The notes below the pieces were generated by a model, which was not told where the DNA came from, did not search any database, and saw nothing but the letters and a program-made list of their open reading frames with translations. This document shows, piece after piece, positions 3 to 63,690 of a DNA stretch of 64,000 bases; position 1 is the first letter of the stretch; every line of letters starts with the position of its first letter. Both the position numbers and the translations under genes were made by a program. Where the stretch lies: positions 170,736-234,735 of the IMG/VR virus record IMGVR_UViG_3300046005_000547; one strand, given 5' to 3'.

Positions 3-1916
3 GCTGGTGTTGTTAGGTTTAAAATTTATCTTGGTAGTACGCGAATAATTGGCGCATCGCAAGCTAATGCAGGTGTACCGAACCTTGCTATCGCACGTCA
101 TATCAATGGACAGTCGCAGAATTTGTGGTTGAACGGTGTAAAAGATACCTCAGGTGGTGCATTTACAGGCAATAGTGTTGGTTTTGGGTATTACGGATTT
201 AATCATAGTAGCGGTACAGGCGCGTCTATTCTTAACGCTGTTTGGAATCGCGCATTAACTGATACTGAAATCAAATCGTTATCTGAAAATCCTTGGCAAA
301 TTTTCGTGCCTGAACGTCGTATTGTTGCGTTTGATGCGGCTGTTGTTAGTGGGGTGATTGATTTACCTATTTTTGGTGTAGAAATAGATTCTAATGTTGA
401 ATCCCCAATTATTTCAACATTAGAATCCCCAATTAATTCTGTATTGAGCGTATGTTCTGCAGAAAATGTAATACATTCATCTTTTAATGATTTATCCAAT
501 ACTCAATCGATTTCATTTATTGGTATTCCAAATGTAATTGGTTCATTTAATTTATCTTCGATTGGTTTGACCGGTGGTGTAGGGAATGTATCTGTTTCCG
601 TAAATGAATCGTCTTCGATAGAATTATCAGGGATCTCATCAGGATTCGGAGATGGATTCGTTACAAAATTGATAAATGTGTCGTTGAATGGATTATCTTC
701 TAATGTTGGAATTGGTGATATTTTTAAAAATGTACAGAAATCTATCACCAATATACAATCTAATGGATTATTAAATTCATTTAATGTATTAAATGATGGT
801 TTCGTAATAGGTTCATCAGCGAATGTATATATTGGATTAACATCAAGTCTAATAAATAAACAAATTTCTGATGTAAATTCTATTTCTGATGTAAATGATT
901 TGTTGAATACAAGAAGTAATTTATTGAATGGGATATCGTTAAATTCGAGTTCTGGAACCATGAGTAACGGATCGCTGAAAATTATTCAATCTTTATATTC
1001 AAACGTTTCATTAGGTAATATCGCAAACGATACAAATAAAATTATTGTTGGTAATAATTCAACACACAACGTTGGAATTTTACAAATTTTAGCAGCCAAT
1101 GATATATCTTCAACAATTTCCTCTGTAATGGGATTATTGAATTTAGGATTATTGCCGTCATCTAGTTCTTCTGTTGTATCATTGACAAATAATGCATCTA
1201 TTTTAAATTTTGGAATTATTAATAAATCTATATCAAGAAACGTATTATCAAATAATGTAAATGTTTATTCTGGTAATCTAGATAAATCGTTTAACAAAAT
1301 TGTTAATGGAATTTTGATTAGTTCTAATGTAAATGGATTATCTTCTAAATTCGAAAAACAAATTATACAAAACGTATCTTCTGTTTTAATCAATGGATTA
1401 AATGTTTCTTCAAATTTTGATATATCTTCGAATTTGATTACAAATAATCTATCATTTTTAGGTAAGAATGTAACTAAAATTATTCAACAAAATTCTATAA
1501 ACGGATATGTTAATACGATGTATCCAGAATTGTTGGGATATTTTCAAGAATTAGTTGGTATATCCTCATCATTATATCAAGGAAATTTCAATAAAAATAC
1601 CTCAAAAATGATTGATTCAATTTCTGGGTATTCTGAATTAGGGTTTATTGATGTGAATCTATTGTTTGGTTTGACGTCAGACAATATAAATGTATCGTTG
1701 AATGATTTAGATGATTTGTTTCGAGATAATGTTTTGTTACCAATTCTATTGAATTCTGAAATAGATGGAATGTATACGTCTAAACAATTTTTGAAAATCT
1801 TGGCAACCGTCATTTATTTCAATTCCATAAAAGATAGTAAATTGAATTTCAACACAATAACAGATATTAATAGATTAAATTTTAATACCATAATAGACAA
1901 AAAGGGGAAATTTTAA
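3..1916 (+). CDS. Virion/tail structural protein, 5'-truncated: end of a LamG/concanavalin-A-like domain followed by a long N/S/I-rich repetitive region
   Basis: Frame is open from nt 3 (AGVVRFKIYLG...), upstream of the listed start. AVWNRALTDTEIKSLSENPWQIF is a typical LamG-domain C-terminus. Followed by a BppU-like gene with TAATG overlap. Confidence 0.6.
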   Translation, partial: AGVVRFKIYLGSTRIIGASQANAGVPNLAIARHINGQSQNLWLNGVKDTSGGAFTGNSVGFGYYGFNHSSGTGASILNAVWNRALTDTEIKSLSENPWQIFVPERRIVAFDAAVVSGVIDLPIFGVEIDSNVESPIISTLESPINSVLSVCSAENVIHSSFNDLSNTQSISFIGIPNVIGSFNLSSIGLTGGVGNVSVSVNESSSIELSGISSGFGDGFVTKLINVSLNGLSSNVGIGDIFKNVQKSITNIQSNGLLNSFNVLNDGFVIGSSANVYIGLTSSLINKQISDVNSISDVNDLLNTRSNLLNGISLNSSSGTMSNGSLKIIQSLYSNVSLGNIANDTNKIIVGNNSTHNVGILQILAANDISSTISSVMGLLNLGLLPSSSSSVVSLTNNASILNFGIINKSISRNVLSNNVNVYSGNLDKSFNKIVNGILISSNVNGLSSKFEKQIIQNVSSVLINGLNVSSNFDISSNLITNNLSFLGKNVTKIIQQNSINGYVNTMYPELLGYFQELVGISSSLYQGNFNKNTSKMIDSISGYSELGFIDVNLLFGLTSDNINVSLNDLDDLFRDNVLLPILLNSEIDGMYTSKQFLKILATVIYFNSIKDSKLNFNTITDINRLNFNTIIDKKGKF

Positions 1917-3199: not shown

Positions 3200-3862
3200 T
3201 TATTTGTGTGCAATTAAAACAAATCTTCTACCTTTACTGTTTGGTAACCAAATCTTATCGTCAGCCAAATTCTTTGTATCATAATTGATTACTTTACCAG
3301 AATCATCCTTTATGAAATCATGTTCTATTGTATCATAAACAAATACATTTAATGAAGGAACTATTGATAACTTCTTCCATAATCTTTTACCGCCTTCATA
3401 TTGAACGTTATCGGAAACAATAACGTATCCATCATCCATCAATGCTTGGTATATAGAAGAAGCTAATCCAAGTCCTTCTAAGTTGGGAACTGTTGCTACA
3501 ATTGATATTTGTAATTGTTTCTTATGTTCCAATTCCGCTGGTAAATTATCAATCAAAGGGTGTTTAAAATGAACTAGACACGCAACATAATATATTTTAG
3601 CTCCGTCTTCTTGCCGTATAGTTGGTATATAAACGCCAGCCATCCCTTTTGTTTTTGTCAATAAAATTGTATAATCACCAATAACACTCGAATTTTTTAC
3701 AGTTTTAATCAAATCAAATCTTCTTTGAACTGTTTCATCTGTTATATATCTACCAGCATCACCTTCGGCCGATATTGTAATCCAAGCAGACTGGTCTTTC
3801 GTTTCTGGTCTATGTTCAGGCATTTCTAATATCATCTTTCTAATTTCTGCAAATGTTTTCAT
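3200..3862 (-). CDS. GNAT-fold protein with capsid-targeting-like N-terminus
   Basis: N-term MKTFAEIRKMILE; VATVPNLEGLGLASSIY...SDNVQYEGGKRLW resembles GNAT motif A; late-promoter-like TTAAATA upstream. Confidence 0.5.
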   Translation of the reverse strand: MKTFAEIRKMILEMPEHRPETKDQSAWITISAEGDAGRYITDETVQRRFDLIKTVKNSSVIGDYTILLTKTKGMAGVYIPTIRQEDGAKIYYVACLVHFKHPLIDNLPAELEHKKQLQISIVATVPNLEGLGLASSIYQALMDDGYVIVSDNVQYEGGKRLWKKLSIVPSLNVFVYDTIEHDFIKDDSGKVINYDTKNLADDKIWLPNSKGRRFVLIAHK

Positions 3863-12688: not shown

Positions 12689-13621
12689 CTAACGATGCGC
12701 AGATAATCTCGCAGATTCAATTTTCTTGATTTTTGGTAACAATTTATTTGCCAATTTTGTGATAGTTGCTCGTTTCTTCTGAACCATCTTTTCCAATCTT
12801 TCTTTTTCAGGAATCGATAATGTATTCAGAGGTTTCTTAGCCATTTTTGTTTTAAACGCAATAATGGCAGCATGTCTTGCTCTGGAAGCAATTTTAGCTG
12901 GAGATGATTTTGTATGTAATGCCAATTTCATTTTAGCGGTTCGTTTCGATTGAGATTGATGAAATTTAACAGCCATTTTCAATCGAGCCATTCTACTTAA
13001 CATTTCATCAAGACGTTCCACAGATTCATTAGTTGGTACATAAGGATCTACAATACCTGGATGAATATACCCCATATGATTATCTTCATCATCAACAATA
13101 TGTAATTCATCGTCGTCATATACATCCATACCAATTAAATCTTCTAAATCTCCGATACTGTCGTAAATATCATCAACAACATCATCGTTAATTCCAATTA
13201 AATTCCCGAAAATATCTTCTGTTGTTGTATCGTCTTCTAAATCATATTCTAATTCTTCAACTTTACCGTCATTGTCGATATCTCCATCAATCTTACCATC
13301 TTTATTCTTATCTTGTAAATGATCTGGAATATCATCATCATTGAAATCTGTATAAGATTTTCTTGGTACATTATATAATGAATCCATTGTACCACTAGAT
13401 GTGGCTTCATTTACTCGTTTTCTTAATTCTTTGAATGTTTGCATTGGTTTAACCGATTCTGATACTGTTGAAATAATGACATTCGATGCCGTCTTTTTAA
13501 GAGCATCGGGGATTGTCTTGTCGTCTTTTAATCTTACCATCATTTTCTTCTTAAAATCTTTATCTTTTGGATTTAAGTCAAATGTATCGGCAAGCATCTG
13601 TAATAATTGTTCGTCTTTCAT
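12689..13621 (-). CDS. Putative head-associated protein: acidic middle, basic helical C-terminal domain, internal protease-site motifs
   Basis: ESVKPMQTFKELRKRVNE/A; DKNKDGKIDGDIDNDGK; basic C-terminal region; CATAAATA upstream (13647-13654). Confidence 0.55.
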   Translation of the reverse strand: MKDEQLLQMLADTFDLNPKDKDFKKKMMVRLKDDKTIPDALKKTASNVIISTVSESVKPMQTFKELRKRVNEATSSGTMDSLYNVPRKSYTDFNDDDIPDHLQDKNKDGKIDGDIDNDGKVEELEYDLEDDTTTEDIFGNLIGINDDVVDDIYDSIGDLEDLIGMDVYDDDELHIVDDEDNHMGYIHPGIVDPYVPTNESVERLDEMLSRMARLKMAVKFHQSQSKRTAKMKLALHTKSSPAKIASRARHAAIIAFKTKMAKKPLNTLSIPEKERLEKMVQKKRATITKLANKLLPKIKKIESARLSAHR

Positions 13622-21313: not shown

Positions 21314-21506
21314 TTAATGTATATAATTCAGAAATTGTATTCGATTCATGATTCCATAGTTCTGTTCTAATGATTTCATGAATGGAAATAGGTTCAACAT
21401 TTTCATCAGAATGAATCATCCAATCAGCATCGTTGATTGCGTCAATAATGTTCTCGTGAAATGATGATTCAATTTTACTACCAGTTGCATATTGTAATTC
21501 AAACAT
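21297..21506 (-). CDS. Hypothetical protein
   Basis: Packed ORF. Confidence 0.55.
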
Positions 21507-21512
21507 ATTTTG

Positions 21513-22022: not shown

Positions 22023-22023
22023 A

Positions 22024-23446: not shown

Positions 23447-24172
23447 ATGAAAGCATTATCTATTGGTATCAACAAATACAACGTAGCACCTCTGAGAGGT
23501 TGTATAACAGATTCTAATGATTTAACAACAGAATTGATTGAAAGGGGATTTGATGTATCGAGGTTGTTAGACGAACAAGCAACCAAATCAAACATTATTG
23601 AAAAGATGCATCAATTATTGTCTGAATCCAAAACAAAATTCATTTTACATTATTCTGGACACGGTTCACAGATCCCATGTTCAAATGGTTCGGAAGAAGA
23701 TGGATTGACTGAAATCCTATGTCCATTCGATTTAATCAATTCAGACGGTTCATGGACATCCAATTATATCACAGATGATGAAATACAACAATTGTTCTCA
23801 GAGTTTCCTGATATTCATATAGAAGTTATTCTTGATTGTTGCCATTCAGGAACCGCAACTAGAGATATTAAACCAACATCCATTACTCCTAGATTCATAC
23901 AATCTCCTGTTATAAATTCATCTAAGAATATTCCATTCGGAGTATCTAATGATAATGTAATCTGTTGGAGCGGATGCACCGATAATCAGACGGCAGCTGA
24001 CTCGTTCATCGACGGGAAATACAGGGGAGCATTTACCACAGCATTTTTGACTGCTTCTGGTAACAGAGAAATAATGTTTAAGAATATTACGGATTACATG
24101 ATTAAGAATGGATATGAACAACGACCAGTCTTAACTTGTACAGATAAACAAAGGACAGAATCAATGTTCTAA
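23447..24172 (+). CDS. Metacaspase / caspase-family (C14) peptidase
   Basis: ALSIGINKY..LRGCITD; HYSGHGSQ (His); ILDCCHSGT (Cys); GAFT; AGGAG RBS and TTAAATA upstream. Confidence 0.93.
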   Translation: MKALSIGINKYNVAPLRGCITDSNDLTTELIERGFDVSRLLDEQATKSNIIEKMHQLLSESKTKFILHYSGHGSQIPCSNGSEEDGLTEILCPFDLINSDGSWTSNYITDDEIQQLFSEFPDIHIEVILDCCHSGTATRDIKPTSITPRFIQSPVINSSKNIPFGVSNDNVICWSGCTDNQTAADSFIDGKYRGAFTTAFLTASGNREIMFKNITDYMIKNGYEQRPVLTCTDKQRTESMF

Positions 24173-25499: not shown

Positions 25500-26200
25500 A
25501 ATTGTTAGTATAATGTATTAGATATAATCGAAAAAGAGTCTTGAAGTAATATAGAAAATAATAAAAGAATATTAAAATGAAACAATAGAACTAACTCAAA
25601 CCGTCGACATAGTCTAGTATACTGGGTTTTTATCGATTTCGAAAGGAGTAATTAGACGTTGATTATTACACATTCGATAACCTTGGTCTCTTTCGATACG
25701 TGATTATAATTGTTTCGATGTTAATGTTTAATTTAACAGTCTATATTGTTGTTTTAAGATGTATTAAATGTATCCTGTAGAGTTGATTGACATAATAAGG
25801 AAAGATTCCATTAGAGCGGATTATTGGACAAATAATGGATGTTAATGATTCAACATAGAATTGATATATTGTAAATTTCAAACAATAAAAATCCCGACAG
25901 AATTGTTCATTCTTATCGGGATCTGAGACTCAGAGATTTTATGTTGAATTATTGTATAGAATATATTCGATAAAGACATTAATATACTCTATAAAGAATC
26001 TAATAGTAATATAAAAGAATATAGAAAAACAATAGATACACTAACTGAAACGTCGACATAGTCTAGTATACTGTATTTTTTATCATTTCGAAAGGAGTAA
26101 TTAGACTCTGTAATAATCATATTTATTCGATATCCAGTCAATCTTAAGACGTATTCGATGTTCCTTTCGATACATGATATAATCAGTTTCGATGAATAAC
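25500..26200. repeat. Tandem cassette array A: two GTCGACATAGTCTA-anchored units, period 449 bp
   Basis: Anchors at 25603 and 26052; minus-strand promoters TTTCGA-N17-TATACT at 25616-25644 and 26065-26093; hairpin element 25738-25841; terminator 25884-25923. Confidence 0.9.
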
Positions 26201-26488
26201 TTCGATAGATTCAATCTTAACATTATTTGATTTACGTCTATCCAACATATATTCATTGACATTTAATCTAACGAAATTCTCCGATCCTGATACAATCTTA
26301 AATTTACAGATAATATCATATCGACCATCAACCAAGTTTGAATTGTTAAAATTACCGTCAGTTACTCGTTTTAATATGAAGTCAATGTTTGGACTGAACC
26401 ATTTGAATCTCTTGGTAAAATCCAATCTATCTTTTGAATTTTCATATTCCTTCAAACACATCGCTCTGTACATTATCATATCCATCAT
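26183..26488 (-). CDS. Hypothetical protein sitting inside the repeat scaffold
   Basis: RBS+ATG supplied by left end of hairpin element H3; 3' end overlaps TTCGA boxes. Confidence 0.7.
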   Translation of the reverse strand: MMDMIMYRAMCLKEYENSKDRLDFTKRFKWFSPNIDFILKRVTDGNFNNSNLVDGRYDIICKFKIVSGSENFVRLNVNEYMLDRRKSNNVKIESIEVIHRN

Positions 26489-26491
26489 TTA

Positions 26492-26587
26492 ATCCATCTT
26501 ATTTGTCGTTTAAACAACGTTTCCATTATATCCTGTAGAGTTGATTGACAATATCAATAATCGTCAACTATGGACAAATAATGTCCA
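26492..26587. repeat. Inverted-repeat element copy H3
   Basis: Core TCCTGTAGAGTTGATTGACA at 26531-26550; arms TCCATCTTATTTGTC / GACAAATAATGTCCA. Confidence 0.85.
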
Positions 26588-27431: not shown

Positions 27432-28637
27432 CTATAACTCGTACAAAGAAATATTTTTATCTTCGTTACCCGTAAATTTTAACATATTTCTAGGATTATA
27501 TTTTGTTTCGAATTCTATTCTTTCTTTTTCGTCAAACCATTCATTATAATGGGAAACGCACAATTTTCCTCCAATTGATTTTTCTAAATTAAACCCCATT
27601 ATTTCTCTGGAGTTTGGTTCGTCTTTGTAATAAGTGTGGGTGTCAAAATTCAATCCTTTATCATATAATGCACTAGAATATTCTTTTTTTGTTTTTGCGA
27701 ATTCTTTCGCAAATTTACCTTTCGTATTCATAGCGATTACGAAAGGTTTAAAATTTATTTCACCTTCCCAAGAATAATATAATTTATCGTATAATTCTGC
27801 GATTTTATTGGTATTTACGTACAATTGGTAGAATAAAGGATTATGTTTTATCGTTTTTCTTAATTGACATAAACAAGTTTCTAAATTATAAATATCGATA
27901 TGGATTATAGAATTATCGTTACAATAATGATATATTTCTTTAACCTTTTCTTCGAAAAATAATAATCTATTTATGTCCGTATTTTTTGTTTTTTTAATTA
28001 TTTGCCATTCTTCTTTATTTAAAACCCAACAAAGAGCATTCCATTGCGACCAACTATTTTGGTTTTCCAACTGTAATTCCGGTATATCTATATCATAATC
28101 GAAAAACTCATACATCATTTGTTTCGTTAACCAAACCCCCATTCTACCGTATCCATGTAAACTTTGTAATTCTTCGGTTAAATTATTGAAATTAGTTATA
28201 GGATTTCCAGTTTTGGTTAATTTTTCAAAATGTTCGATTATGTCAATGTTTTCGTATCGTTCTTTTAAATCTTTAAATAATCCGACAAAATTCCTATAAC
28301 ATTTCAAAGTATCAGTCGCGTAGAAACATCTTTTCGAATTATTTTCAACGAATTCGTTTATTTCTTCTACAGAAGTTTCTAAAAAATTAGGAAACTTCTG
28401 TAGAATTATCATTGGCCAATGACTCCGATAAGATTGACCAAAAATTAAGCAATAAAAAAGTTTTTGTTTATCTGTTAAATTCATTTCGGAAGCGATAACT
28501 TTACCATGGTGCCAATGATCTATATCTCCTTCTAACATTAAAACGTTTGTATACCTTCTAAACAATTCCATTCTATTTTCAGGTAATCTCCAATCTTTAT
28601 AATTCGATTCTTCTAATTCATAATCAAATAAACTCAT
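27432..28637 (-). CDS. Second aGPT-Pplase / amino-acid:DNA transferase
   Basis: DWRLPENRMELF; EGDIDH; LHGYGRMGVWL; NLETCLCQLRK; immediately downstream of a TET/JBP gene. Confidence 0.7.
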   Translation of the reverse strand: MSLFDYELEESNYKDWRLPENRMELFRRYTNVLMLEGDIDHWHHGKVIASEMNLTDKQKLFYCLIFGQSYRSHWPMIILQKFPNFLETSVEEINEFVENNSKRCFYATDTLKCYRNFVGLFKDLKERYENIDIIEHFEKLTKTGNPITNFNNLTEELQSLHGYGRMGVWLTKQMMYEFFDYDIDIPELQLENQNSWSQWNALCWVLNKEEWQIIKKTKNTDINRLLFFEEKVKEIYHYCNDNSIIHIDIYNLETCLCQLRKTIKHNPLFYQLYVNTNKIAELYDKLYYSWEGEINFKPFVIAMNTKGKFAKEFAKTKKEYSSALYDKGLNFDTHTYYKDEPNSREIMGFNLEKSIGGKLCVSHYNEWFDEKERIEFETKYNPRNMLKFTGNEDKNISLYEL

Positions 28638-28767: not shown

Positions 28768-30138
28768 TTAAAAGAATTCATCCAATGATGTAGATTCAAA
28801 TTCATCTTTAAGGTCTTGATGATATTCATCAATCCATTGTTGCCCTTTCTCATGTTCTAATAAGAAATCGTACCATTCTTTCGATGTCCACATTTTTTGG
28901 AAAACGCCGTTCCAAAGTGGGCGCCATAATGGATGCGTCTCATCTTTACGTCTGGTGTCAACAAACAAACGTCTATAATCTTCATATTCCTTTGAACCCA
29001 GACCCAACATGTCTTCTCTGAAATAAGCAATAACAGAAATACGTTCACCACCTTCTTCGGTTTGAATGAATTCAGTGTTTCCATGTAAAATTTCATGATT
29101 ATTGATTAAACATAAATCTCTTGGTCTAATGTTAACTGCAATTCTATATGCAGGAAACACTAGATAACAACCTTCATAATTCTCATTTTTAGATAACACC
29201 AATAGATTTGAGAACCCTGATGTCAAATCACCGGCATCAAAATGATAATGCGTACGAAACGATTTATTTACAGTCACTGTTGTAAATACGGTTTCGGGAA
29301 TCAAAAATGCTGGATCCATTTTGTCGGCAGCTGCTCTCTGGTTACCCCATCTCCAAGGTAATAATTCCTTGAATCCTCCATTCAAACGTTTGAAAAATGG
29401 AAATGATAATTTGAATTTATCAAAATGATGGTCGGTGTATCCGGTTGCTCTACCATAAGGGATTCGTGGGTATCTTGAATACCATCCAGCAATACCAGAA
29501 TATGCTGGAGCAGCATAAACTGTATTAGACACCCAATTTTTCATTACAAATAATGCTCGTTCTTTGGCATCTTCTTGGTCCATGGATTCTAATTCTGAAA
29601 CCAATTCATCAAATTTAAAATTGTCTGGAGTTTTATTAGTCAACCATACAGAAGTTCTTAAACCGTTGTTAGATGAATTATCTTGTTGTTTGAGTTGTTC
29701 TAATGGATCCGAACCGTCTAATGTACTTGTTCTATCAATAAAGTATTCTAAAATATCATGTTGACGTTTAGTGAATCGTTCGCGTCGTTCATTATCTGTT
29801 ATTTCTTCTAACATACCAGCAGCAAGTCCGCGATTGTTAGATAATACAGCAGCATCTCTTAATCCGCCGTACGCTCCATCGTGTTCTTCAATAGTGAAAA
29901 ATCCTTTACGATATTTAAATGCGATACGCCGTTCATCAGAACCTTTATCGCATGAATTACATTCAGATACACAAGTTGCTTTGGTTGATAAATCGCATAA
30001 TGGTTCCATGTATACATCAACGTCTTCGTCGATATCTCCCCCAGGTCCAATTAAAATATCATAATGAGATCTATCTGCACCATGACCCAATAGGTGGTCT
30101 ACGTTATGTTTTTCTTTTGCTACAATAATTCTTGCCAT
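28768..30138 (-). CDS. TET/JBP-family 2OG-Fe(II) dioxygenase, paralog A
   Basis: PETVFTTVTVNKSFRTHYHFDAGD (HxD); ILHGNT; ERISVIAYFRE; YPRIPYGRAT. Confidence 0.9.
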   Translation of the reverse strand: MARIIVAKEKHNVDHLLGHGADRSHYDILIGPGGDIDEDVDVYMEPLCDLSTKATCVSECNSCDKGSDERRIAFKYRKGFFTIEEHDGAYGGLRDAAVLSNNRGLAAGMLEEITDNERRERFTKRQHDILEYFIDRTSTLDGSDPLEQLKQQDNSSNNGLRTSVWLTNKTPDNFKFDELVSELESMDQEDAKERALFVMKNWVSNTVYAAPAYSGIAGWYSRYPRIPYGRATGYTDHHFDKFKLSFPFFKRLNGGFKELLPWRWGNQRAAADKMDPAFLIPETVFTTVTVNKSFRTHYHFDAGDLTSGFSNLLVLSKNENYEGCYLVFPAYRIAVNIRPRDLCLINNHEILHGNTEFIQTEEGGERISVIAYFREDMLGLGSKEYEDYRRLFVDTRRKDETHPLWRPLWNGVFQKMWTSKEWYDFLLEHEKGQQWIDEYHQDLKDEFESTSLDEFF

Positions 30139-32633: not shown

Positions 32634-33995
32634 TTATCCCATTAGATCTTCTAATGAAACTGATTCGAATTTGTCTTTTAAATCTTGATGATATTCATCT
32701 AACCATTGTTGTCCTTTATCGTGAATCAATAAGAAATCATACCATTCTTTTGAGTCAAACATATGAGGATAAACCCCATTAAAGAATTCATGCCATTTTG
32801 GATTTGTTTTATCATGTTTAGAATTTTCAACAAATTGTTTTCTATGGTCTTCATATTCTTTAGAACCACATTCTAACAATCCATGTCTAAAATATGAGAT
32901 GACGCTTACTCTATGTGCATCTGGTTCATTTTTGATAATTTTTGTATTACCATGCATGATTTTACTATTATCGACAATTAACAAATCTCCTGGTCTTACA
33001 TTAACAGCAATTCTATATTCAGGGAATACTAGATACCCACCAGAGTAATTATCATTGTTAGATAATACCAACAAATTAGAAATAGCATCCTGTAAATTGG
33101 CTGCATCGAAGTGGCAACCCGTAACCCACGTGTTATTTACAGTTAGAGTGGTGAACACTGTTTCGGGAATCAAAAATGCTGGATCGATTTTATCTGTGGC
33201 ATCTTTTTGTAATTGCCATCTTCTTGGCATTAAATCTCTGAATCCTCGATTTAATGACTGGATAAATGGGTAACATTTTTTAAATTTATCAAAATGATGG
33301 TCTGTATAAGCAGTAGCTCTACCATAAGGTTGACGAGGATATCTACTCCACCACCCACAAACTCCACTCATGGCAGGAACCGCCATTGACGTTCCAGATA
33401 CATGTTTCTTATGGATTCGGATAGCTTCTGCTTGAGCATCTTCTCTACTCATCTTTGATAATGAATCCACCCATGATTCAAAATCAAACATTTCCTCACC
33501 ATACAGAACCCAGACGACACCCTTTGTTACAGTGGTATCATCTTTACGTTTCCGTAATTCAGATAATGTATCGTCATCATATAATGAATCTAACGGATTC
33601 ATGAAGTAATCAAAGATTGAACGTTGGTAATCAGATACATAATTACGTTTGGCATCTTTGTTGTTCGATTTATCGCGTTCTGTATATTTACCAGCAGCAG
33701 TTCCTCTATTGTTTGAAATAGTGGCAGCATCTTTCAATCCTTCTAATGCCATGTCTTGTTCTTCTTTTGTGAAGAAGTTCTTACGAAACTTGAACGCAAC
33801 TCTGAATTCATCAATACCTTTATCGCATGAATGACATTCAGATACACAATCAAGTTTTGTTGATAGGTCACAGACTGGTGGAGTATAAACGTCCGCATCT
33901 GATTCAATTAAAACATCATAAAATGAATCATCAATGAATGTTCCCAGTAAATGTTCACAATCAAGTTTTTCTTTTGCTACAATAATTTGAACCAT
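32634..33995 (-). CDS. TET/JBP-family 2OG-Fe(II) dioxygenase, paralog B
   Basis: PETVFTTLTVNNTWVTGCHFDAAN; IMHGNT; HRVSVISYFRH. Confidence 0.9.
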   Translation of the reverse strand: MVQIIVAKEKLDCEHLLGTFIDDSFYDVLIESDADVYTPPVCDLSTKLDCVSECHSCDKGIDEFRVAFKFRKNFFTKEEQDMALEGLKDAATISNNRGTAAGKYTERDKSNNKDAKRNYVSDYQRSIFDYFMNPLDSLYDDDTLSELRKRKDDTTVTKGVVWVLYGEEMFDFESWVDSLSKMSREDAQAEAIRIHKKHVSGTSMAVPAMSGVCGWWSRYPRQPYGRATAYTDHHFDKFKKCYPFIQSLNRGFRDLMPRRWQLQKDATDKIDPAFLIPETVFTTLTVNNTWVTGCHFDAANLQDAISNLLVLSNNDNYSGGYLVFPEYRIAVNVRPGDLLIVDNSKIMHGNTKIIKNEPDAHRVSVISYFRHGLLECGSKEYEDHRKQFVENSKHDKTNPKWHEFFNGVYPHMFDSKEWYDFLLIHDKGQQWLDEYHQDLKDKFESVSLEDLMG

Positions 33996-38187: not shown

Positions 38188-38667
38188 TTATCTATCGTTA
38201 TTTAAAATCGAATCATTACAATTCCCTTTAATTGAACCATTCACTGTTGAACATTTACCACCAATAGAACCTCCGACTTTAACGTTTCCATTGGTCGTTT
38301 TTACGTTACCAGCGACATTCTTTTCAATCTTAACGGATCCATTCGTGGTTTCGACTTCACCAACATCTCCAGTAACAAATACGTTTTCGCATACGTCTAC
38401 TTGTAATGATTCGATATTACCATTAATTGTGATGTTAATTGTTTTCTCATCATCAGAATTCACCAATTTGTCATTAACATACACTTTATTGTTTACAACT
38501 CGAACGTTTCTACCACCAGCATATTGTTTATCGTTTACAATAATACTACCAGCAACGTTATCTGTATCTTTTGAATTCCAAAATGCCATTTTATTTCTCC
38601 ATCTTCTTGAAAATGGTATCACAAATCTTAGGAACTTGTTCTCCTGCCTTACCTTCAAAGAATTCAA
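38188..38667 (-). CDS. Beta-helix repeat protein (DUF4097/adhesin-like)
   Basis: Repeats GDVGEVETTNGSV / GNVKTTNGNV / GKCSTVNGSI. Confidence 0.6.
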   Translation of the reverse strand: MNSLKVRQENKFLRFVIPFSRRWRNKMAFWNSKDTDNVAGSIIVNDKQYAGGRNVRVVNNKVYVNDKLVNSDDEKTINITINGNIESLQVDVCENVFVTGDVGEVETTNGSVKIEKNVAGNVKTTNGNVKVGGSIGGKCSTVNGSIKGNCNDSILNNDR

Positions 38668-39280
38668 ATTCAGCCCACATTGTTGATGGTTTAACTAAAT
38701 CCACCAATAAAATTTTACAGTCTGAACCGACGGCATCCAATAATGACGCAGCAGGATAAACTGATAACGACGTTCCAACCACAACCATGTAATCATAATG
38801 TTCTTCTTTAATCATTGCATATGCAGTTTCAAACATCGGAACATCTTCATAGAAGAATACAATATGTGGTCTTAATTGATTACCTTGTTCAGATAATGTT
38901 CCCACAAACATATCATCAGTCCAATCATATGTAAATCCTGTTACGGTATCTCTTGCTTTAAGTAATTCGCCATGTAGATGGATAACTTTGCTGGAACCTG
39001 CTCGTTCATGTAAATTATCAACATTGGTTGTGATGACTGTTACATCATGATATTGTTCCAATTCCTTGATAGCAATATGTGCTGCATTAGGTTCAACAGT
39101 CTGAACTTCTTTGCGTCTCATGTTATAAAATTCATGAACCAATTCAGGAGTTTCGGCTAATGCCTTTGGTGTACAAACATCTTCAATGTTGTAGTTGTTC
39201 CATAATCCATCTGAATTTCTAAATGTACTCAGACCAGATTCAGCTGATATACCAGCACCCGTTAAAAATAATATCTTCAT
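38591..39280 (-). CDS. Sir2/CobB NAD-dependent deacylase
   Basis: TGAGISAESGLSTFR, TNVDNLHERAGS, HLHGEL, LRPHIVFF, VGTSLSVYPAA. Confidence 0.93.
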   Translation of the reverse strand: MKILFLTGAGISAESGLSTFRNSDGLWNNYNIEDVCTPKALAETPELVHEFYNMRRKEVQTVEPNAAHIAIKELEQYHDVTVITTNVDNLHERAGSSKVIHLHGELLKARDTVTGFTYDWTDDMFVGTLSEQGNQLRPHIVFFYEDVPMFETAYAMIKEEHYDYMVVVGTSLSVYPAASLLDAVGSDCKILLVDLVKPSTMWAEFEFFEGKAGEQVPKICDTIFKKMEK

Positions 39281-55429: not shown

Positions 55430-55489
55430 AAAGTTCATTGGATTCTTCCAACTTGAACTCTATTATAATGATTTTTATTTACATCGAAA
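55430..55489 (-). promoter_or_regulatory. Early promoter plus stem-loop leader identical to 27365-27402
   Basis: TTTCGA-N16-TATAAT at 55462-55489; 38-bp identity. Confidence 0.8.
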
Positions 55490-56136
55490 GAACTTTCTAA
55501 AGATTTAATATAAAAATTAATGTCGTGTGAATTTTTAATAAATTTACCAGTCAATCTATCTTTGATTATGTCCATTATATTACAGTCTTGAACGATATTC
55601 CCTTTGGAATTTATATACATTAAAATCCCATGATGTCTATAAGGATAAATCGGAGTCATGGGAGCATAATCATACGCAGCAGCAAATCTATAATGTGTTG
55701 ATTTAACGTTATCCACAAATTCTTTATTACCAATTCTAGGGGATCCAAAAGAATATATGACACAATCATCTCTGTCGATTAAATGTGAAAAGATAACTGC
55801 GATTGCACCACCCAATGAATGTCCAGTCAAATATAATTTTTTATTTTTGTCTAATCTATCACCCAATGATTCCAATAACAATTCAGAATATCTCAAGAAT
55901 CCACTTTGAATCCCTTTTTTCAATGTAAATGATATATCAGCAATCCAATCTTCTGGTTCGTCAGTGCCTCTGAATACAATTATTTGTTCAGTTTCTGATT
56001 CCAATAAGAATGCTTGCGCAAAACAATTTGAAAATAATTCAACAGAATACCCTTGTACAGTTATTGAATCGTTGTATGATTGTTTAGATAGATTAGCGAA
56101 GAATAATGCTTCATATAGAATCATAAATCTGTCCAT
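55435..56136 (-). CDS. Class 3 lipase (alpha/beta hydrolase)
   Basis: IVFRGTD, LTGHSLGGAIA nucleophile elbow, SFGSPRIGN, HDI..Y. Confidence 0.9.
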   Translation of the reverse strand: MDRFMILYEALFFANLSKQSYNDSITVQGYSVELFSNCFAQAFLLESETEQIIVFRGTDEPEDWIADISFTLKKGIQSGFLRYSELLLESLGDRLDKNKKLYLTGHSLGGAIAVIFSHLIDRDDCVIYSFGSPRIGNKEFVDNVKSTHYRFAAAYDYAPMTPIYPYRHHGILMYINSKGNIVQDCNIMDIIKDRLTGKFIKNSHDINFYIKSLESSFDVNKNHYNRVQVGRIQ

Positions 56137-57899: not shown

Positions 57900-59560
57900 A
57901 TAAAGTCGAGGAAGACACTAAAAGAAAACCTAAAAACAATAGATACACTAACTCAAACCGTCGACATAGTCTAGTATATCCGAGTTTTATCGATTTCGAA
58001 AGGAGTATTCTTATCATGTAATAATCATATTCGATGCTTACGGTTATCCTTCGATGTCCTTAATGCTCTTTCGATATGTTGAATTTACAGTTTCGATGTA
58101 ATCATTAAATCCTTTCCAATTATTTGTTGTTTAAGATGGATTCATTATATCCTGTAGAGTTGATTGACATTTAACATAAAGATTCCATTAGAGTGGATTA
58201 TTGGACAAACAATAGATACATTAGGGTTGTTTTGGAATGACAATTCTGTATATTGAATCCAATAAAAATCCCAACAGAATGTTTAGTTCATATTGGGATT
58301 CTGGATGACAGAGATTTTATGTTGAATAATTGATATAATAAAGTCTATAAAATGTCTTGTGATGATATAATAAAGTCTATAAAGAGTCTTGAAGTAATAT
58401 AAAAGAATACTAAAACGAGTAAAGAACATTAATAGAACTAACTCAAACCGTCGACATAGTCTAGTATACTGGGTTTTTTATTATTTCGAAAGGAGTATAA
58501 GACGATGATTATTACACATTCGATACATTATTTCATCTTAAGATTCCGTTTCGATGTTTAATATGTTCTTTCGATATGTTGAATTTACAACTTCGATGTT
58601 CTTGTTTATTATAGACATCCATATTGTTGTTTTATGATGGATTCAATATATCCTGTAGAGTTGATTGACATATAATGGAAACGATCCATTAGAGCCCATT
58701 AACGAGCAAATAATGGATATATTAAGAATGATTCGGAACAAACATATTGTAAATTTCAAACAATAAAAATCCCACTCAGAATAAATCTGGCGGGATCTGA
58801 ATGACGGAGATTTTATGTTGAATATAGATGATTATATTATGTCGTTGTAGTAATATAATAATGTCTATAAAGAATCTAATAGTAATATAGAAGAACACTT
58901 AATGAAAGTAAAGGCAATAACTGAAACGTCGACATAGTCTACTATAATTGAATTTCGTCGAAAAGTCAAGAGAAATCTTTAGCTTGTAATAATCATATTC
59001 GATGCCTTAGATTATCGAACAATACCTTTAATGCTCTTTCGATACATGGTATCTATTGTTTCGATGTTAACATAAAATCCTGTCCAGTTATTTGCTGATT
59101 TAAGATGGAGAGATTTTATGACATAGAGTTGATTGACATAATATACAAAGATTCCATTAAGATGGAATATTGGACAAATAATGGATGTTATATGATTGGA
59201 TTGAAATCATATTATGTAAATTTTAAACAATAAAAATCCCAACAGAATGATTAGTTCACGTTGGGATGAATTATAAAGTCGATAAAGAATCTTGAAGTAA
59301 TATAGAAAACAATAAAAGAATATAGAAATGTTATTAAAGGTAATAACTGAAACGTCGACATAGTCTACTATACCCGAGTTTCTGACATTTCGAAAGGAGT
59401 TTAAGACGTTGATTATATCAAGCTCGACGTTTCGTGTATTCTTAAGACTCTTTCGATACATTGAATTTACATCTTCGATGTTAACATTTAATCCTACATG
59501 GAAATTTGCTGATTTAAGGACGATTCATTATATCCTGTAGAGTTTCCTGTCATACATAAT
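57900..59560. repeat. Tandem cassette array B: four units, no credible genes
   Basis: GTCGACATAGTCTA anchors at 57960, 58450, 58928, 59354 (periods 490, 478, 426); hairpin cores at 58150, 58651, 59119, 59533; terminators at about 58261-58300, 58762-58797, 59229-59267. Confidence 0.95.
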
Positions 59561-59629
59561 AAAAACATGTTAAATTGTATTATTGAACAAACAAATAAAT
59601 AAATAAATAAAATAACAAAAGGATAATCC

Positions 59630-62431
59630 ATGAAAACCTTCACTGACATACGCAAACAAATCAACGAGAACAGTCTTTATACTTCTCAACAAGAGAAAGA
59701 CGACTTCCTGAAAGATAAAAAGAAAATTGTAACTGCATTCTTATACTCTTTCATCGGTAATCTATCTCTTTACAATAAAGACTCTGCCAAAGCAAAACAT
59801 TATTTCTTATCGGATAAGAAATTACAGATTGTCAACATCAATGACGATAACAATGATGCGTCTTTAATTCTGAAAATCATGCATGATGAACATGGATTCA
59901 AGAATACAAACACTGCCAATGAGATGACTAAATTATTGGCAAAATTGAAAGTCTCGGATGTATCATCATTCGATGATGCAATTATCAGAGCATGGTTGTC
60001 GGATCTATCTCCTGCGTTCCATTCCGCTATCCCAACGGATTTGAAAAAGACTGTCGATGATTACATGAATAGTGTCACCAGTTTCGATAGATTGAGTTAC
60101 AAATTGTATAAACATAAGACTGCTTATGGTGACGGAGAGTATCTTGATTTGGCAAAGAAAGTTGGTCGAATCGAAAGACATACACATAAACCGAAAGTCG
60201 TAGTGACTCCAACTGCATCTGCCGTTCCACCTACATTAGCAAATCCTCAGATATTTGTTCCTACCGTTAATACATCGACTGCTGTTGTTACAACTCCACC
60301 GGATGTTATAGATGAACCTATTCAAATTGTTGAGAAAGAACCAGAAGTTAAACAATTCAATCAAGAATTGTATGACAAATTTAAAGTTAAAAATTTATTG
60401 AGTGATGATGAATGGGATGAATTGATTGAGGATAAAGAAGTTTTCGTTAAAATAATGATTGAATCTCCGAAACGATTATATACAACCCAATACCATAAAA
60501 TTAGAAAAGTTATGTTCAAAGAATTATCGGAAGAACAACTCATGGAAATGAAGAAAGTCTCCTGGAATTTAGATGTATTTAAATATGATATCAAAGATTC
60601 AATCATGATTCTGAAAGATAGAAATATGGATTTCGTTAAGATTTTTGGACCTTTACGAGTTGCGCAATATATGTGCGACAAAGATATTTCCGCGGGTAAA
60701 GAAATCATTGATTTTTATACTGAACAAAAGATCTTAATTTCAACTGATAATGGTAATCGTATTGTAAAGGATTTTCCAGAAATCTTAGTGGATGCAGTTA
60801 AATTGACAATCAAAGACATGGGAGTCGATTATGGTAGCTCGATGGCTGTTCATTTAAATCAACAACAAATTGATGAAATTTATGATGTTAATGATAGATT
60901 ACTTGTATTACGAAATGTTGTATTGACTGGTAGATTGATAAAGGATCCAGTTGATTTATTGAAGAAATTCAATTACAATGAAGTTTTAATCAAAGCTGGT
61001 TTAGAAAATACAAGTGTGCCTCATTTCACGCCGTATCTAAATTCAATGAATAAATTGTTCATGGAAGATATGGATAAATGGTATCCATGGGAACGAAAAT
61101 ATAGTTACATTAAACAATTATTCACCAAACCAAATGTAATTGATTATTTCAATGATAAATTTAAAAGAGCATTTACGGATGATGGTGTATTTGAATACTT
61201 CGACGACAAAGAACGATTAGATGGTATTTCATCATCATTGTTTGATTTGTTAGTATCCAATTATAAAACCAAACCGGAACTTGTTGATTCTATCTTCAAT
61301 GATTTTGGTGATAAGATTAAAACAAGAGTCAAAAAGAATTTCAACTCGACATTCAGAGTGATGCATGATTTAAAAGATAGCGCATTACCAATCAAAGAAG
61401 AACTAGATGCCAAATCTATTCAAGCTATCTTGGAATTCAATGACATCGACCTTAGTGTAATTTCTGGCACCAAAATGAAATTCTCTAAGAACAAATCGTT
61501 AAGTCAAACAATCAATGATTTTGTTAAAGATGAATCTGTTACCACTATTGAACCATTGAAAATTGTTGATTTGAAAACATCTGATGCAGATAACAAGAAG
61601 TTATCTCAGAAGATTGTTGATGAAACGCATTCTGGTGGTAAACATGGGGACATCTATCCATTAGTCTTACGTCAATTTGAAGTTCATCTACCAGATGATA
61701 AATTCCAAGAGTTCAAAAAATTGATGATTCAGAATAATTCACATAAAGAGATTGTTCCTGCTTTCCATGGCACTGGTTCTATTGCAGCTAATATGATTCT
61801 TAGATATGGATTTAAAGTGTTACCAGAACAAAGTAATTCTGCTATTGGTATACAAGGTAGAATGTTAGGTGATGGTATTTACTTTGGTACCAATATCGAC
61901 AAAGTATTACAATATGTTGGTAATAAAGGAATGACCAGAAGACTTGGTACAACTGGATATGTATTTGAAATGGAGAACGAACTTGGGGTAAAAGGTAATG
62001 ATTACAAAGAAGCTGGGTTGGGTAATGATAAAATTGCTTCGCCAGAATGGGTTGTATTTGATGCCAACAGACAATTAAAAATTATTAAGGCGTATGAAGT
62101 GAAATTGGTAGATAAATCAGAATTAGATAAATCATTAAATGAATCAGTCAAACCAAGAATGATGTCATTCAAAGAATATGTTGATATCAAGAAGAACAAT
62201 TATACATCATACAATTTCTATGACAGAAATGTAATTACGCCTGATGGCAAAGTAATCAAATCGACTGATGTAACAGACACTACATTTAAGAAAGGTATTA
62301 GAGTTGAAATCAGAGGAAGAATTACATCAGTGATTATTCCAACGAAACAATTAGAATTCAATGATGTATTGAGTTGTTATGATTTACAGGATAAACAATT
62401 AGACAAGTATCTTCGTCTATTGAATAAATAA
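59630..62431 (+). CDS. Large PARP-like (H-Y-E) ADP-ribosyltransferase, probable injected head protein (functional analogue of T4 Alt)
   Basis: N-term MKTFTDIRKQINE; catalytic motifs AFHGT, GRMLGDGIYF, SPEWVVF; (TAAA)n late-promoter-like tract and AAGGA RBS upstream. Confidence 0.8.
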   Translation: MKTFTDIRKQINENSLYTSQQEKDDFLKDKKKIVTAFLYSFIGNLSLYNKDSAKAKHYFLSDKKLQIVNINDDNNDASLILKIMHDEHGFKNTNTANEMTKLLAKLKVSDVSSFDDAIIRAWLSDLSPAFHSAIPTDLKKTVDDYMNSVTSFDRLSYKLYKHKTAYGDGEYLDLAKKVGRIERHTHKPKVVVTPTASAVPPTLANPQIFVPTVNTSTAVVTTPPDVIDEPIQIVEKEPEVKQFNQELYDKFKVKNLLSDDEWDELIEDKEVFVKIMIESPKRLYTTQYHKIRKVMFKELSEEQLMEMKKVSWNLDVFKYDIKDSIMILKDRNMDFVKIFGPLRVAQYMCDKDISAGKEIIDFYTEQKILISTDNGNRIVKDFPEILVDAVKLTIKDMGVDYGSSMAVHLNQQQIDEIYDVNDRLLVLRNVVLTGRLIKDPVDLLKKFNYNEVLIKAGLENTSVPHFTPYLNSMNKLFMEDMDKWYPWERKYSYIKQLFTKPNVIDYFNDKFKRAFTDDGVFEYFDDKERLDGISSSLFDLLVSNYKTKPELVDSIFNDFGDKIKTRVKKNFNSTFRVMHDLKDSALPIKEELDAKSIQAILEFNDIDLSVISGTKMKFSKNKSLSQTINDFVKDESVTTIEPLKIVDLKTSDADNKKLSQKIVDETHSGGKHGDIYPLVLRQFEVHLPDDKFQEFKKLMIQNNSHKEIVPAFHGTGSIAANMILRYGFKVLPEQSNSAIGIQGRMLGDGIYFGTNIDKVLQYVGNKGMTRRLGTTGYVFEMENELGVKGNDYKEAGLGNDKIASPEWVVFDANRQLKIIKAYEVKLVDKSELDKSLNESVKPRMMSFKEYVDIKKNNYTSYNFYDRNVITPDGKVIKSTDVTDTTFKKGIRVEIRGRITSVIIPTKQLEFNDVLSCYDLQDKQLDKYLRLLNK

Positions 62432-62470
62432 TGAAAGAATCCCAGACATGTTAAAGTGTCTGGGATTTTT
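62432..62470. terminator. Intrinsic terminator
   Basis: AATCCCAGACA/TGTCTGGGATT followed by TTT. Confidence 0.85.
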
Positions 62471-62471: not shown

Positions 62472-62645
62472 ATGGAAATTTGTTGTTTTAAGATGGAATA
62501 ATAACATCCTGTAGAGTTTATTGACATATAATGGAAACGAACAACTAGAGTCCATTAACGAACAAATAATGGATGTTTTAATATTGATTTGTGGTCAGAA
62601 TATTGTATCCAATAAAAATCCCAGTCAACTTCGGTCTTCTGGGAT
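62472..62645. repeat. Partial cassette: inverted-repeat element H9 plus the array-type terminator
   Basis: Core TCCTGTAGAGTTTATTGACA at 62507-62526; AATAAAAATCCCAG..CTTCGG..CTGGGAT at about 62611-62645. Confidence 0.85.
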
Positions 62646-63028: not shown

Positions 63029-63223
63029 TTAGTCTTTCCAATCAATCCTTAGATTGTTCTTTGTAAAGAACTTCACAACGGATGAACTAATTACATTTCT
63101 GAAACATTGATGTAATTTAAAATTAGGTATCTTAACGCCGATATTACGAGTTATCCATTCAGATACATCTTTCTCAACGTAATTAATCAATTCTCTAATC
63201 TCATGGTCTTTTAAACCATTCAT
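63029..63223 (-). CDS. Hypothetical protein
   Basis: ATGA overlap with upstream gene. Confidence 0.6.
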   Translation of the reverse strand: MNGLKDHEIRELINYVEKDVSEWITRNIGVKIPNFKLHQCFRNVISSSVVKFFTKNNLRIDWKD

Positions 63224-63690
63224 GATTCTTTAATCGGTTCAATACTGAATGAATCGAATGTCAATTTATTTCCTTGTAATTGTTTAGTTAATTCTTCGAT
63301 CTTCTGAATATCTTCATCACTTGGTTTATACTTAATCGATAAATGTGGGATGTATTCAGGATAAGAATGTTTGTATCCTAGATTACTCAATACATTATGT
63401 TGAGCAATCAAATCAGGAGATTCTAATGTCAATGTAACGGCACCCCATGTAGAACCTTTCTCACCAAGTAATTTACATCCAGCGATAATACCAACAAATT
63501 TATCATGTAATGATTCAACTTTGTATGCGGGATTAGATACATCATACATTAATGTTACATGTAAATCCTCGATGATGTCTTCAATTCCATTATCATTGAA
63601 GAAACCTCTGATACGTTTGGAATCCTCTTCCGATAATTTAACAGATACGTATCCACCATTATATTGTTTCCATTGTTCAAATGTTAACAT
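63220..63690 (-). CDS. 2H phosphoesterase, T4 gp57B/Acb1-like anti-CBASS nuclease
   Basis: GYVSVKLS; DLHVTLMY (HxT); YKHSYPEYIPHLSIKY (HxS). Confidence 0.8.
   Translation of the reverse strand: MLTFEQWKQYNGGYVSVKLSEEDSKRIRGFFNDNGIEDIIEDLHVTLMYDVSNPAYKVESLHDKFVGIIAGCKLLGEKGSTWGAVTLTLESPDLIAQHNVLSNLGYKHSYPEYIPHLSIKYKPSDEDIQKIEELTKQLQGNKLTFDSFSIEPIKES

Follow-up and report, generated by a model that had tools for sequence, protein, structure and literature searches.

In phage T4, the prohead protease gp21 cleaves after L/I-X-E, and the ADP-ribosyltransferase (ART) Alt loses a 7-residue N-terminal propeptide and is processed at its C-terminus too (PMC9026906). [quoted passage not shown] MuF-fused and polyvalent head-packaged phage ARTs follow the same general idea of an ART that is carried in the head and acts on entry (PMC9503650). 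Phage PARP-type ARTs are among the commonest viral ARTs (PMC9503650), and for the Aeromonas phage Aeh1 a PARP-like pART was described in 2005 (PMC1266365) and 2006 (PMC1524935). The Aeh1 protein is still listed as being of 'unknown function' (PMC10789625), and surveys have listed phage PARP-type ARTs over two decades with no proposal of how they are delivered or act.

Here we analyze a PARP-type ART gene in a 64,000-nucleotide stretch of the virus record IMGVR_UViG_3300046005_000547 (the window). The gene occupies 59630..62431 on the + strand and is an unbroken 933-aa ORF with an ATG start, stop codon included, in agreement with the initial annotation of this DNA. A megablast search with the gene found no match among 50,697 phage records, so the phage has no close sequenced relative in that set. 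The protein matches PHROG 18612 (E=1.7e-122) and belongs to the same family as the Aeh1 protein (Aeh1ORF131c / Aeh1p141, 1211 aa), with about 33% identity from the N-terminal domain to the C-terminus. Further relatives are found in PX29, phiAS5, Stenotrophomonas Menderavirus, Xanthomonas BUDD/X1, Pseudomonas pf16 and Ralstonia RSP15, and every carrier identified is a T4-like phage or a related large myovirus (also PMC9025141; PMC5587285). Domain order, the H-Y-E triad, a leader ending in L-x-E and a post-catalytic L-x-E are common to the window protein and its Aeh1-type relatives. No full-length members are shorter than the window protein and its three nearest metagenomic relatives, which have 933-947 aa compared with a typical 1100-1500 aa. 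The protein is not a newly recognized kind, given the 2005-2006 reports on the Aeh1 member and the several GenBank relatives already annotated as ART or PARP-domain proteins.

The PARP-type catalytic domain lies at 61550..62137 (+, residues about 641-836), as delimited by PF00644, the triad, and the PARP1 profile and Foldseek matches. Its three motifs are FHGT at residues 712-715 (H713, nt 61766-61768), GIYF at 749-752 (Y751, nt 61880-61882) and PEWVVF at 805-810 (E806, nt 62045-62047), all within the range of about 61760-62060 in which they had first been noticed. The triad is kept almost without exception in homologs, with H713 in 104 of 105 and both Y751 and E806 in 105/105. PF00644 matches the 933-aa protein at E=4e-5 with 23.6 bits, just below the curated cutoff of 26.7, and is matched by 22/24 relatives at E<=1e-3 (best E=8e-10). 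A profile built from the catalytic part alone finds PARP1 at E=9e-7, with PARP2 and the tankyrases next, and its H and Y align at the level of single residues; no residue-level alignment to a solved PARP extends as far as E806, which in the predicted structure starts a strand after a loop. The family profile was needed for this, as a single-sequence PDB search gave only weak tankyrase matches (E about 0.5). Structure prediction, which had been proposed earlier as a check, gives a catalytic domain with pLDDT mostly >90 and a fold that Foldseek matches to PARP1/2 catalytic fragments (E=4e-9, probability 1.0). Fold matches in BFVD include a pf16 'PARP catalytic domain-containing protein' and iridovirus 100L. 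The eukaryotic PARP1, PARP2 and tankyrase domains, which are the best solved matches in both sequence and fold, thus have the ART fold and H-Y-E in common with the window protein at about 15% identity.

Around the triad, the NAD-pocket residues H672, G673, R725, R744 and S804 are also invariant-like in the 105 homologs, which share only about 25% identity. Near invariance of triad and pocket at such divergence argues for selection on catalysis. With its invariant H-Y-E triad and PARP1-like predicted fold, the catalytic machinery looks complete; our literature search found no report of NAD-dependent ADP-ribose transfer for any family member. Two kinds of match were set aside. PP507 and DP622, the top two of the full-length profile search, are gappy and cover only the helical low-complexity middle, and are non-specific. 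PHROG 23333, labeled 'polymerase' (E=1.6e-5), spans only residues 695-766 of the catalytic core and was read as a PARP-named family, not a nucleic-acid polymerase.

T4 Alt, in contrast, belongs to the R-S-E class (PF03496) and has no detectable homology to the window protein. PF03496, the R-S-E exoenzyme-type ART family, matches neither the window protein nor any of 24 relatives, whereas Aeh1 Alt matches it at E=1e-14, and neither BLASTP nor hhalign finds anything between the window-family PARP-like protein and Aeh1 Alt. By these sequence comparisons the catalytic domain is PARP-class and unrelated to Alt, and the original assignment to the H-Y-E rather than the Alt/Mod R-S-E class stands. The words 'rather than Alt' are misleading if read as replacement. 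Aeh1 has alt as well as the PARP-like gene; the PARP-type protein thus comes on top of Alt, and its target is probably other than Alt's.

The remainder of the protein is made up of several regions. An all-helical, conserved N-terminal domain (residues 14-180, 59669..60169, +) is predicted by AlphaFold with pLDDT >90; its fold search gave no significant PDB match (best E=0.44), and a 2005 remark on coat-protein similarity was not reproduced. It is followed by a Pro/Thr/Val-rich linker, by composition of the translation, that is predicted to be disordered (residues 185-240, 60182..60349, +; pLDDT 33-36), and by a middle region of predicted helical secondary structure (residues 245-640, 60362..61549, +). 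The last part of this middle region may be the counterpart of the PARP-like regulatory helical domain. Against 350-residue HD+ART fragments of PARP1, Foldseek aligns about 390-400 columns, more than the ART fold alone, at TM about 0.40 and rmsd about 15 A; the hint comes from alignment length alone, as sequence profiles match the ART part only and give no sequence-level support for such a domain. Behind the catalytic domain lies a small, conserved, beta-rich C-terminal domain (residues 847-933, 62168..62428, +; predicted with pLDDT about 88-95), in which F863 is invariant in a 24-sequence alignment. PF00644 is the sole Pfam family found in the 24 members, with no MuF/portal-associated, nucleic-acid-binding or eukaryotic PARP accessory domain, and NCBIfam gave no matches. 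With a MuF/portal-associated domain in 0/24 members, delivery in this family would use a T4-type propeptide instead.

The protein begins with a putative leader or propeptide, MKTFTDIRKQINE (residues 1-13, 59630..59668, +), which was recognized from a conserved column and from its recurrence and ends in I-N-E, a gp21-type L/I-x-E site. The site is kept as [L/I/V/M]-x-E in 95/105 homologs while the leader in front of it varies from 3 to 33 residues. A second conserved gp21-type site, L-N-E at residues 836-838 (62135..62143, +), sits in a hinge behind the catalytic domain and is present in 83 of the 105 homologs. It reads LNE|S at 836-839, with MMSFKEY following at 844-850, and residues 840-845, right after LNE, are the one stretch of its C-terminal third that the model predicts with low confidence. 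The number of such motifs is not unusual in itself (11 [L/I]-x-E observed versus 8.5 +/- 2.6 in shuffled sequences). The protein holds 14 [L/I/V]-x-E motifs, and only those at 11-13 and 836-838 are conserved at domain boundaries; a third conserved one, VFE at 778-780 (64/105 homologs), lies inside a core strand. N-S/T-L-Y, just after the N-terminal site, is conserved too, so folding, and not cleavage, might be what keeps that site conserved. In most homologs the post-catalytic site is followed within a few residues by another L-x-E, which the window protein lacks.

Residues 839-850 form an internal leader-like element, SVKPRMMSFKEY (62144..62179, +), which resembles both the N-terminal leader and a cassette within another protein of the window, and its F847 is kept in 100/105 homologs. 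The CTS-like leader, Pro/Thr/Val linker, helical middle, LNE/S and second CTS-like motif listed in the initial annotation are therefore each present.

The leader recurs on other proteins of the same phage. A 220-aa protein encoded at 3200..3862 (-) starts with the near-identical leader MKTFAEIRKMILE, with 9/13 identities. A 310-aa protein encoded at 12689..13621 (-), next to an Ig-domain (Hoc-like) gene, carries it internally with 7/13 identities, as a cassette ...VSE-SVKP-MQTFKELRKRVNE-ATSS at residues 53-72; the post-catalytic element SVKPRMMSFKEY matches the ...SESVKP-MQTFKE... of this cassette at 9 of 15 positions. Among 1321 candidate starts used as background, no other exceeds 5/13. The bodies of the leader-sharing proteins are unrelated to one another, and in unrelated phages the 220-aa protein has homologs that align to its body (residues 44-219) but have no leader, which makes the leader portable. 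The likeness to T4 IPI, IPII and IPIII is one of layout, with 13 residues here versus 10 in the T4 capsid targeting sequence and with one copy internal. The 220-aa protein is, by its leader, a candidate co-packaged internal protein, and more generally the shared leader marks out candidates for the internal head proteins of this uncultured phage. In Aeh1, the leaders of the phage's own Alt and gp22 are similar to the post-catalytic element of the PARP-like protein. Judged from the alignments, chance does not account for the triad and exactly two boundary motifs being conserved family-wide, nor for the leader turning up on further proteins. ORF 123..1916 (+) was considered as a second packaged enzyme and rejected; it has no family matches and probably runs past the left end of the window.

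The gene also has the marks of its own transcription unit. Three overlapping copies of AATAAATA, the T4-type late-promoter consensus (taken from PMC1524935) with A at the first position, lie at 59594..59609 (+), 21-36 nt upstream of the ATG. WATAAATA is depleted in the window (10 occurrences versus 33.6 +/- 6.3 expected), and 3 of the 10 are those just upstream of this gene. An RBS-like AAAAGGA is read from the sequence at 59617..59623 (+), 6 nt before the ATG. Directly 3′ of the stop codon is a terminator-like, GC-rich hairpin with A and T runs on either side (62438..62467), which could act in both directions. A sigma-70 promoter scan was uninformative (32 sites versus 33.6 expected). The gene runs opposite to its early-type neighbors, like Aeh1 alt, while the homolog in Aeromonas phages and in the metagenomic relative L004 is co-oriented with runs of small early-type genes. 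A late-promoter motif is also found at -34 in L003, a 71%-identical relative; no exact late motif lies upstream of the homolog in L004 or L005. In Aeh1 and PX29, CTAAATA, which is the Aeh1 late consensus (PMC1524935), lies about 35-40 nt upstream of the homolog, directly after a terminator. The motif is thus T4-type at the window gene and Aeh1-type at the Aeh1 homolog.

Most probably, though with considerable reservation, we take the family member to be an injected PARP-type enzyme that is made late, packaged into the head via its leader, trimmed by gp21 and active on a host macromolecule. The promoter motif of gp55 type, the RBS and the terminator hairpin would form a self-contained late transcription unit, with late timing suggested by these motifs. 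The 13-residue leader would direct the protein to the prohead core, like the T4 capsid-targeting propeptide, and a T4-type prohead protease (a gp21 homolog; gp21 and the head genes lie outside the window) would cut after I-N-E13. A second cut would probably fall after L-N-E838, in a flexible hinge, much as T4 Alt is trimmed at both ends, and the mature product would consist of the N-terminal domain, linker, helical region and PARP domain. After ejection with the DNA, it would attach ADP-ribose from host NAD+ to a macromolecule of the host right at the onset of infection. Its working logic would resemble that of T4 Alt and the Alt-like Aeh1p260, as a late gene set against early neighbors with a short L/I-x-E propeptide. 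The second gp21-type site towards the C-terminus and the NAD-dependent modification after injection would also parallel T4 Alt, for which packaging and cleavage have been shown experimentally; for the window protein we infer both from sequence. The boundary gp21-type sites, the shared leader and the late-promoter motifs give indirect support to the earlier description of the protein as virion-type and injected. A bolder version, which we regard as rather unlikely, is that a PARP1-like enzyme, possibly one that builds poly(ADP-ribose), is split by the protease into an effector running from the N-terminal to the PARP domain and a C-terminal beta-domain with its own targeting element, both of which would be injected to act on a target unlike Alt's.

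The same catalytic evidence would serve equally for a PARP-type enzyme that is made late but stays in the cytoplasm of the producing cell, acting there on host or phage proteins or defense factors, or against superinfection, with the conserved motifs being structural or regulatory. An ADP-ribosylglycohydrolase gene lies immediately upstream of the PARP-like homolog in Aeromonas phages, Aeh1 and PX29 included, and would suit an intracellular writer/eraser pair. A cluster of the NAD-related genes NADAR, NAMPT and Prs near the homolog in L003 also speaks for this reading. The window gene has no adjacent glycohydrolase gene, and among five metagenomic relatives no conserved gene neighborhood was found beyond close relatives, the glycohydrolase adjacency being confined to the Aeromonas phages. 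A further point in favor of a cytoplasmic enzyme is that we found no virion proteomics of carrier phages (pf16, Ps15, vB_OspM_OC, X1, Aeromonas phages) in the searchable literature. We nevertheless consider this unlikely, as it leaves unexplained why one 13-residue leader occurs on unrelated proteins, why two boundary [L/I]-x-E motifs are kept while leader length and sequence vary, and why the post-catalytic element tracks the leaders of each phage's own head proteins.

A packaged enzyme might still have a substrate other than a host protein, either NAD+ itself or the ends or bases of a nucleic acid, DNA or RNA. PARP1 and PARP2, the closest solved relatives, modify DNA ends besides proteins. 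In L003 the NADAR gene (DarT1-type) lies about 2.3 kb downstream of the homolog, the window phage hypermodifies its own DNA, and viral HY-[EDQ] ARTs may have nucleic-acid targets (PMC9503650). The family, however, has no detected nucleic-acid-binding domain, the NADAR adjacency occurs in one lineage only, and the sequence lacks features that tell target classes apart, which makes such a substrate quite improbable in our estimate. The size of the protein and its long helical regions, together with Otto et al. as cited support, could also suit a structural or scaffolding role in the head, with a PARP fold that is retained but enzymatically irrelevant. Effective invariance of H-Y-E and the NAD-pocket residues across the 105 homologs and the lack of a coat-protein match in fold searches make that role very hard to credit.

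Previous reports had already identified PARP-like phage proteins; what is new here is four indirect, sequence-derived lines suggesting packaging, namely the boundary sites, the recurring leader, the late motif and the late motifs placed alike in two Aeromonas phages, so that the packaging evidence includes late-promoter motifs across three phages. The sequence evidence turns an 'unknown function' into a specific hypothesis, that of a capsid cargo resembling Alt but with another catalytic domain. Since Aeh1 has both proteins, T4-like phages would, if this is true, inject two unrelated classes of NAD-using enzymes, which would bear on the takeover of host machinery and on the arms race over NAD and ADP-ribose between phages and bacterial defenses. 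Should the enzyme in fact be split as outlined above, it would be the first capsid-delivered PARP-class writer, and the internal leader cassette would amount to modular packing of several cargoes from one gene.

The window phage also carries Tet/JBP and amino-acid:DNA transferase genes, in keeping with the hypermodification of its DNA. Repeats flank the ART gene on both sides, as first noted. Upstream is a gene-free tandem array with units of about 470-500 bp (about 57932-59560, +), and downstream is a 153-nt partial copy of the same unit (62478..62630, +; family D1) with 61% identity to the reference copy; Rfam gave no match on or around the repeats. The suggested link of the enzyme to TTTCGA promoters found no support; TTTCGA/TTCGAT elements occur elsewhere in the window too and the motif is only modestly enriched. 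The repeats are thus neighbors of the gene, with no support for a functional tie to the ART, and the gene's own late-type promoter motif sits between the last repeat and the start codon.

The ORF at 59630..62431 (+) of the window is intact, starts with ATG and encodes a product of 933 aa (hereafter ART), whereas the adjoining genes are nearly all on the - strand. The elements listed in the initial annotation are all found where it had placed them, namely the triad motifs FHGT (residues 712-715), GIYF (749-752) and PEWVVF (805-810), a 13-residue N-terminal leader (MKTFTDIRKQINE), a Pro/Thr/Val-rich stretch predicted to be disordered (185-240), a long helical middle region in the predicted structure, and LNE/S (836-839) followed by MMSFKEY. 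A hairpin (62438-62467) lies 3′ of the stop codon. The window has a G+C content of ~30%, and its genes for UvsX, a gp41-type helicase, NrdA, NrdB, two Tet/JBP-type dioxygenases and two amino-acid:DNA transferase (ADDT) homologs point to a T4-like phage. The dioxygenases and transferases (27432-28637, 28768-30138, 32634-33995 and 19942-20859, all -) imply hypermodified bases in its DNA. A protein identical to ART is encoded on a contig of 234,735 bp. Megablast of the ART gene found no close DNA-level relative among 50,697 phage records.

The proposed H-Y-E (PARP) catalytic class is borne out by several lines of evidence. ART itself matches Pfam PF00644 (PARP) at E=4e-5, its 23.6 bits being just below the curated cutoff of 26.7, and 22 of 24 relatives match the same family (best E=8e-10); no other Pfam domain was found in any of the relatives scanned. 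An exhaustive homolog search gave 318 clusters at 50% identity, the majority being proteins of 1000-1500 aa with a C-terminal PARP domain. Across 105 aligned homologs sharing ~25% identity, Y751 and E806 are invariant and 104 retain H713; H672, S804 and R725 (104/105) are also kept, and position 744 is R in 98 and K in 7. A profile restricted to the catalytic region matches PARP1 (E=9e-7), PARP2 (1e-4) and tankyrases (2e-4), with the family H and Y aligning onto those of PARP1. The AlphaFold model is confident across residues 640-836, and Foldseek matches it to PARP1/PARP2 catalytic fragments (E=4e-9) and, among viral models, to the phiAS5 and pf16 relatives and iridovirus 100L. E806 lies outside all residue-level alignments to solved PARPs and is the putative counterpart of the PARP catalytic glutamate because it is invariant, opens a strand after a loop and belongs to a domain whose whole fold matches. 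The length of the Foldseek alignments is the sole hint of a PARP-like regulatory helical domain. The N-terminal domain (residues 14-180) has a confident predicted fold (pLDDT 90, pTM 0.87), with no significant fold match to a solved structure (best E=0.44).

The catalytic class is also, as proposed, other than that of Alt, the injected R-S-E ADP-ribosyltransferase of T4. Aeh1 Alt matches PF03496 whereas ART falls in PF00644, and neither BLASTP nor hhalign gave any match between the two families. As the Aeh1 genome carries alt alongside the PARP-like gene, Alt and the PARP-type enzyme probably act on different targets. Like the ART gene in the window, Aeh1 alt runs opposite to its neighbors.

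This kind of protein is not new, as the Aeh1 family has been on record since 2005, when two viral PARP-like pARTs were described, the Aeh1 member among them, associated with a large region whose nature was unknown (PMC1266365). A 2006 comparison of T4-like genomes lists it as Aeh1ORF131c, adjoining the ADP-ribosylglycohydrolase ORF132c (PMC1524935), and a 2023 review still gives its function as unknown and terms it a putative functional PARP-like protein (PMC10789625). Several GenBank relatives carry an ART or PARP catalytic-domain annotation. A 2022 survey of viral NAD/ADP-ribose systems names PART (PARP) as one of the most frequent ART families in viruses and proposes head packaging for phage ARTs generally, from MuF fusions and gene context, with no statement specific to the Aeh1-type family (PMC9503650). 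New here is indirect evidence for head packaging and processing, drawn from protease sites, a shared leader, co-variation and late motifs in the sequences.

The T4 head protease gp21 cleaves after L/I-X-E. T4 Alt sheds a propeptide of 7 residues from its N-terminus, and mass spectrometry shows C-terminal processing as well (PMC9026906). ART contains 14 [L/I/V]-x-E motifs, a count not above chance; three of these, and no others, are conserved across the family. Residues 11-13 (kept in 95/105 homologs) end the leader, whose length up to this site varies from 3 to 33 residues across homologs. Residues 836-838 (83/105) lie just ahead of residues 840-845, the one stretch of the C-terminal third that is modelled with low confidence; this stretch separates the catalytic domain from a confident small beta-domain. 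The third, VFE at 778-780 (64/105), is within a strand of the ART core. In Aeh1, the post-catalytic segment of the PARP-like protein (TLEE-SKTMKFGEMLTE-AK) is similar to the propeptides at the N-termini of that phage's own Alt (MSIKEMLMTE-A) and scaffold protein gp22 (MSIKDQLLSE-A).

Two other ORFs in the window share the leader. Among 1321 candidate starts compared with the ART leader over 13 residues, ORF 3200..3862 (-) begins MKTFAEIRKMILE (9/13 identities) and ORF 12689..13621 (-) contains MQTFKELRKRVNE (7/13), with none of the rest above 5/13; the bodies of both products are unrelated to ART. The former encodes a 220-aa protein whose leader is almost the same as that of ART, with a terminator ahead of it as well as a good ribosome-binding site. 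Hypothetical proteins homologous to its body occur in P1-like phages (SJ46, RCS47), Ralstonia RsoM2USA and Campylobacter T4-like phages; they align with it from residue 44 on and do not have the leader, which therefore behaves as a portable module, as does the T4 capsid targeting sequence. The 220-aa protein is a candidate internal head protein. In ORF 12689..13621, which has an upstream ATG with a good ribosome-binding site, the leader-like element is internal and preceded by V-S-E and S-V-K-P, the same arrangement as L-N-E-S-V-K-P-R-M-M-S-F-K-E in ART, and the product may be another head-protease substrate. This ORF lies upstream of an Ig-domain (Hoc-like) gene (11764-12633, -). The Aeh1 gene inh, annotated as a head-protease inhibitor, has the T4 synonym hoc.1.

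The T4 late consensus is TATAAATA, with A at the first position frequent in relatives, and CTAAATA is the Aeh1-type form (PMC1524935). WATAAATA is strongly depleted in the window (10 sites observed against 33.6 +/- 6.3 expected; all 100 shuffles held at least 10), in keeping with selection against stray late promoters. The ART start codon has three overlapping copies 21-36 nt upstream of it, with an AAAAGGA ribosome-binding site in between, and a perfect TATAAATA (12672-12679) lies ~39 nt upstream of the Hoc-like gene start at 12633. In L003, a metagenomic locus whose homolog is 71% identical to ART, the late motif is retained at -34 despite diverged surroundings. In Aeh1 and PX29, a terminator hairpin is followed by CTAAATA ~35-40 nt before the homolog's ATG. 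Together with the protease sites, leader and co-variation, these motifs make it plausible that ART is injected.

The ART gene is flanked on both sides by repeat elements, as first described: tandem units of ~470-500 bp at 57932-59560 (+) and a partial copy of 153 nt at 62478-62630 (+). The units are gene-free and always in + orientation, and hold an invariant 15-mer (CGTCGACATAGTCTA, 6 copies), a 20-mer (CCTGTAGAGTTGATTGACAT, 6 copies at <=1 mismatch), a hairpin oriented to act as a terminator for the - strand, and paired TTTCGAT sites 20-22 nt apart. They have no Rfam match; they could be iterons, small-RNA genes or a small mobile element. No evidence was found for the suggested link between ART and the TTTCGA promoters. 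Further units occur at ~25600-26550 and near 54159 (+), TTTCGAT is only modestly enriched in the window (38 sites against 26.5 expected) owing to the paired sites inside the units, and ART has its own promoter-like motif between the last upstream repeat and the start codon.

The gene neighborhood of ART is not conserved across the family. In Aeh1 (16277-20968 of its locus) and PX29 (4878-9504), an ADP-ribosylglycohydrolase (PF03747, E=1.7e-32) is directly upstream of the PARP-like gene, with the terminator hairpin and CTAAATA between them, possibly as a writer/eraser pair whose members differ in the time of expression. In the window, an Acb1-type anti-CBASS phosphodiesterase (63220-63690, -; PF23474, E=1.5e-15) is two genes downstream of ART. 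Acb1 has the same relative position in L003, where a PIF1 helicase, a DarT1-type NADAR, two TerD, NAMPT and PRPP synthetase (13586-22150) also lie downstream and look like an NAD/ADP-ribose conflict island; the window phage probably carries such an island just beyond position 64000. The remaining relatives have the gene beside baseplate genes or amid early-type genes. At the other end of the window, a large ORF (123-1916, +) matches no family; its mechanically assigned TTG start is probably spurious, the true one likely lying to the left of the window. The accessory genes for a SIR2-family protein (38591-39280, -; E=2.6e-40), a caspase-like C14 peptidase (23447-24172, +; E=1.2e-26) and a class-3 lipase (55435-56136, -; E=7e-18) are unusual in a T4-like phage.
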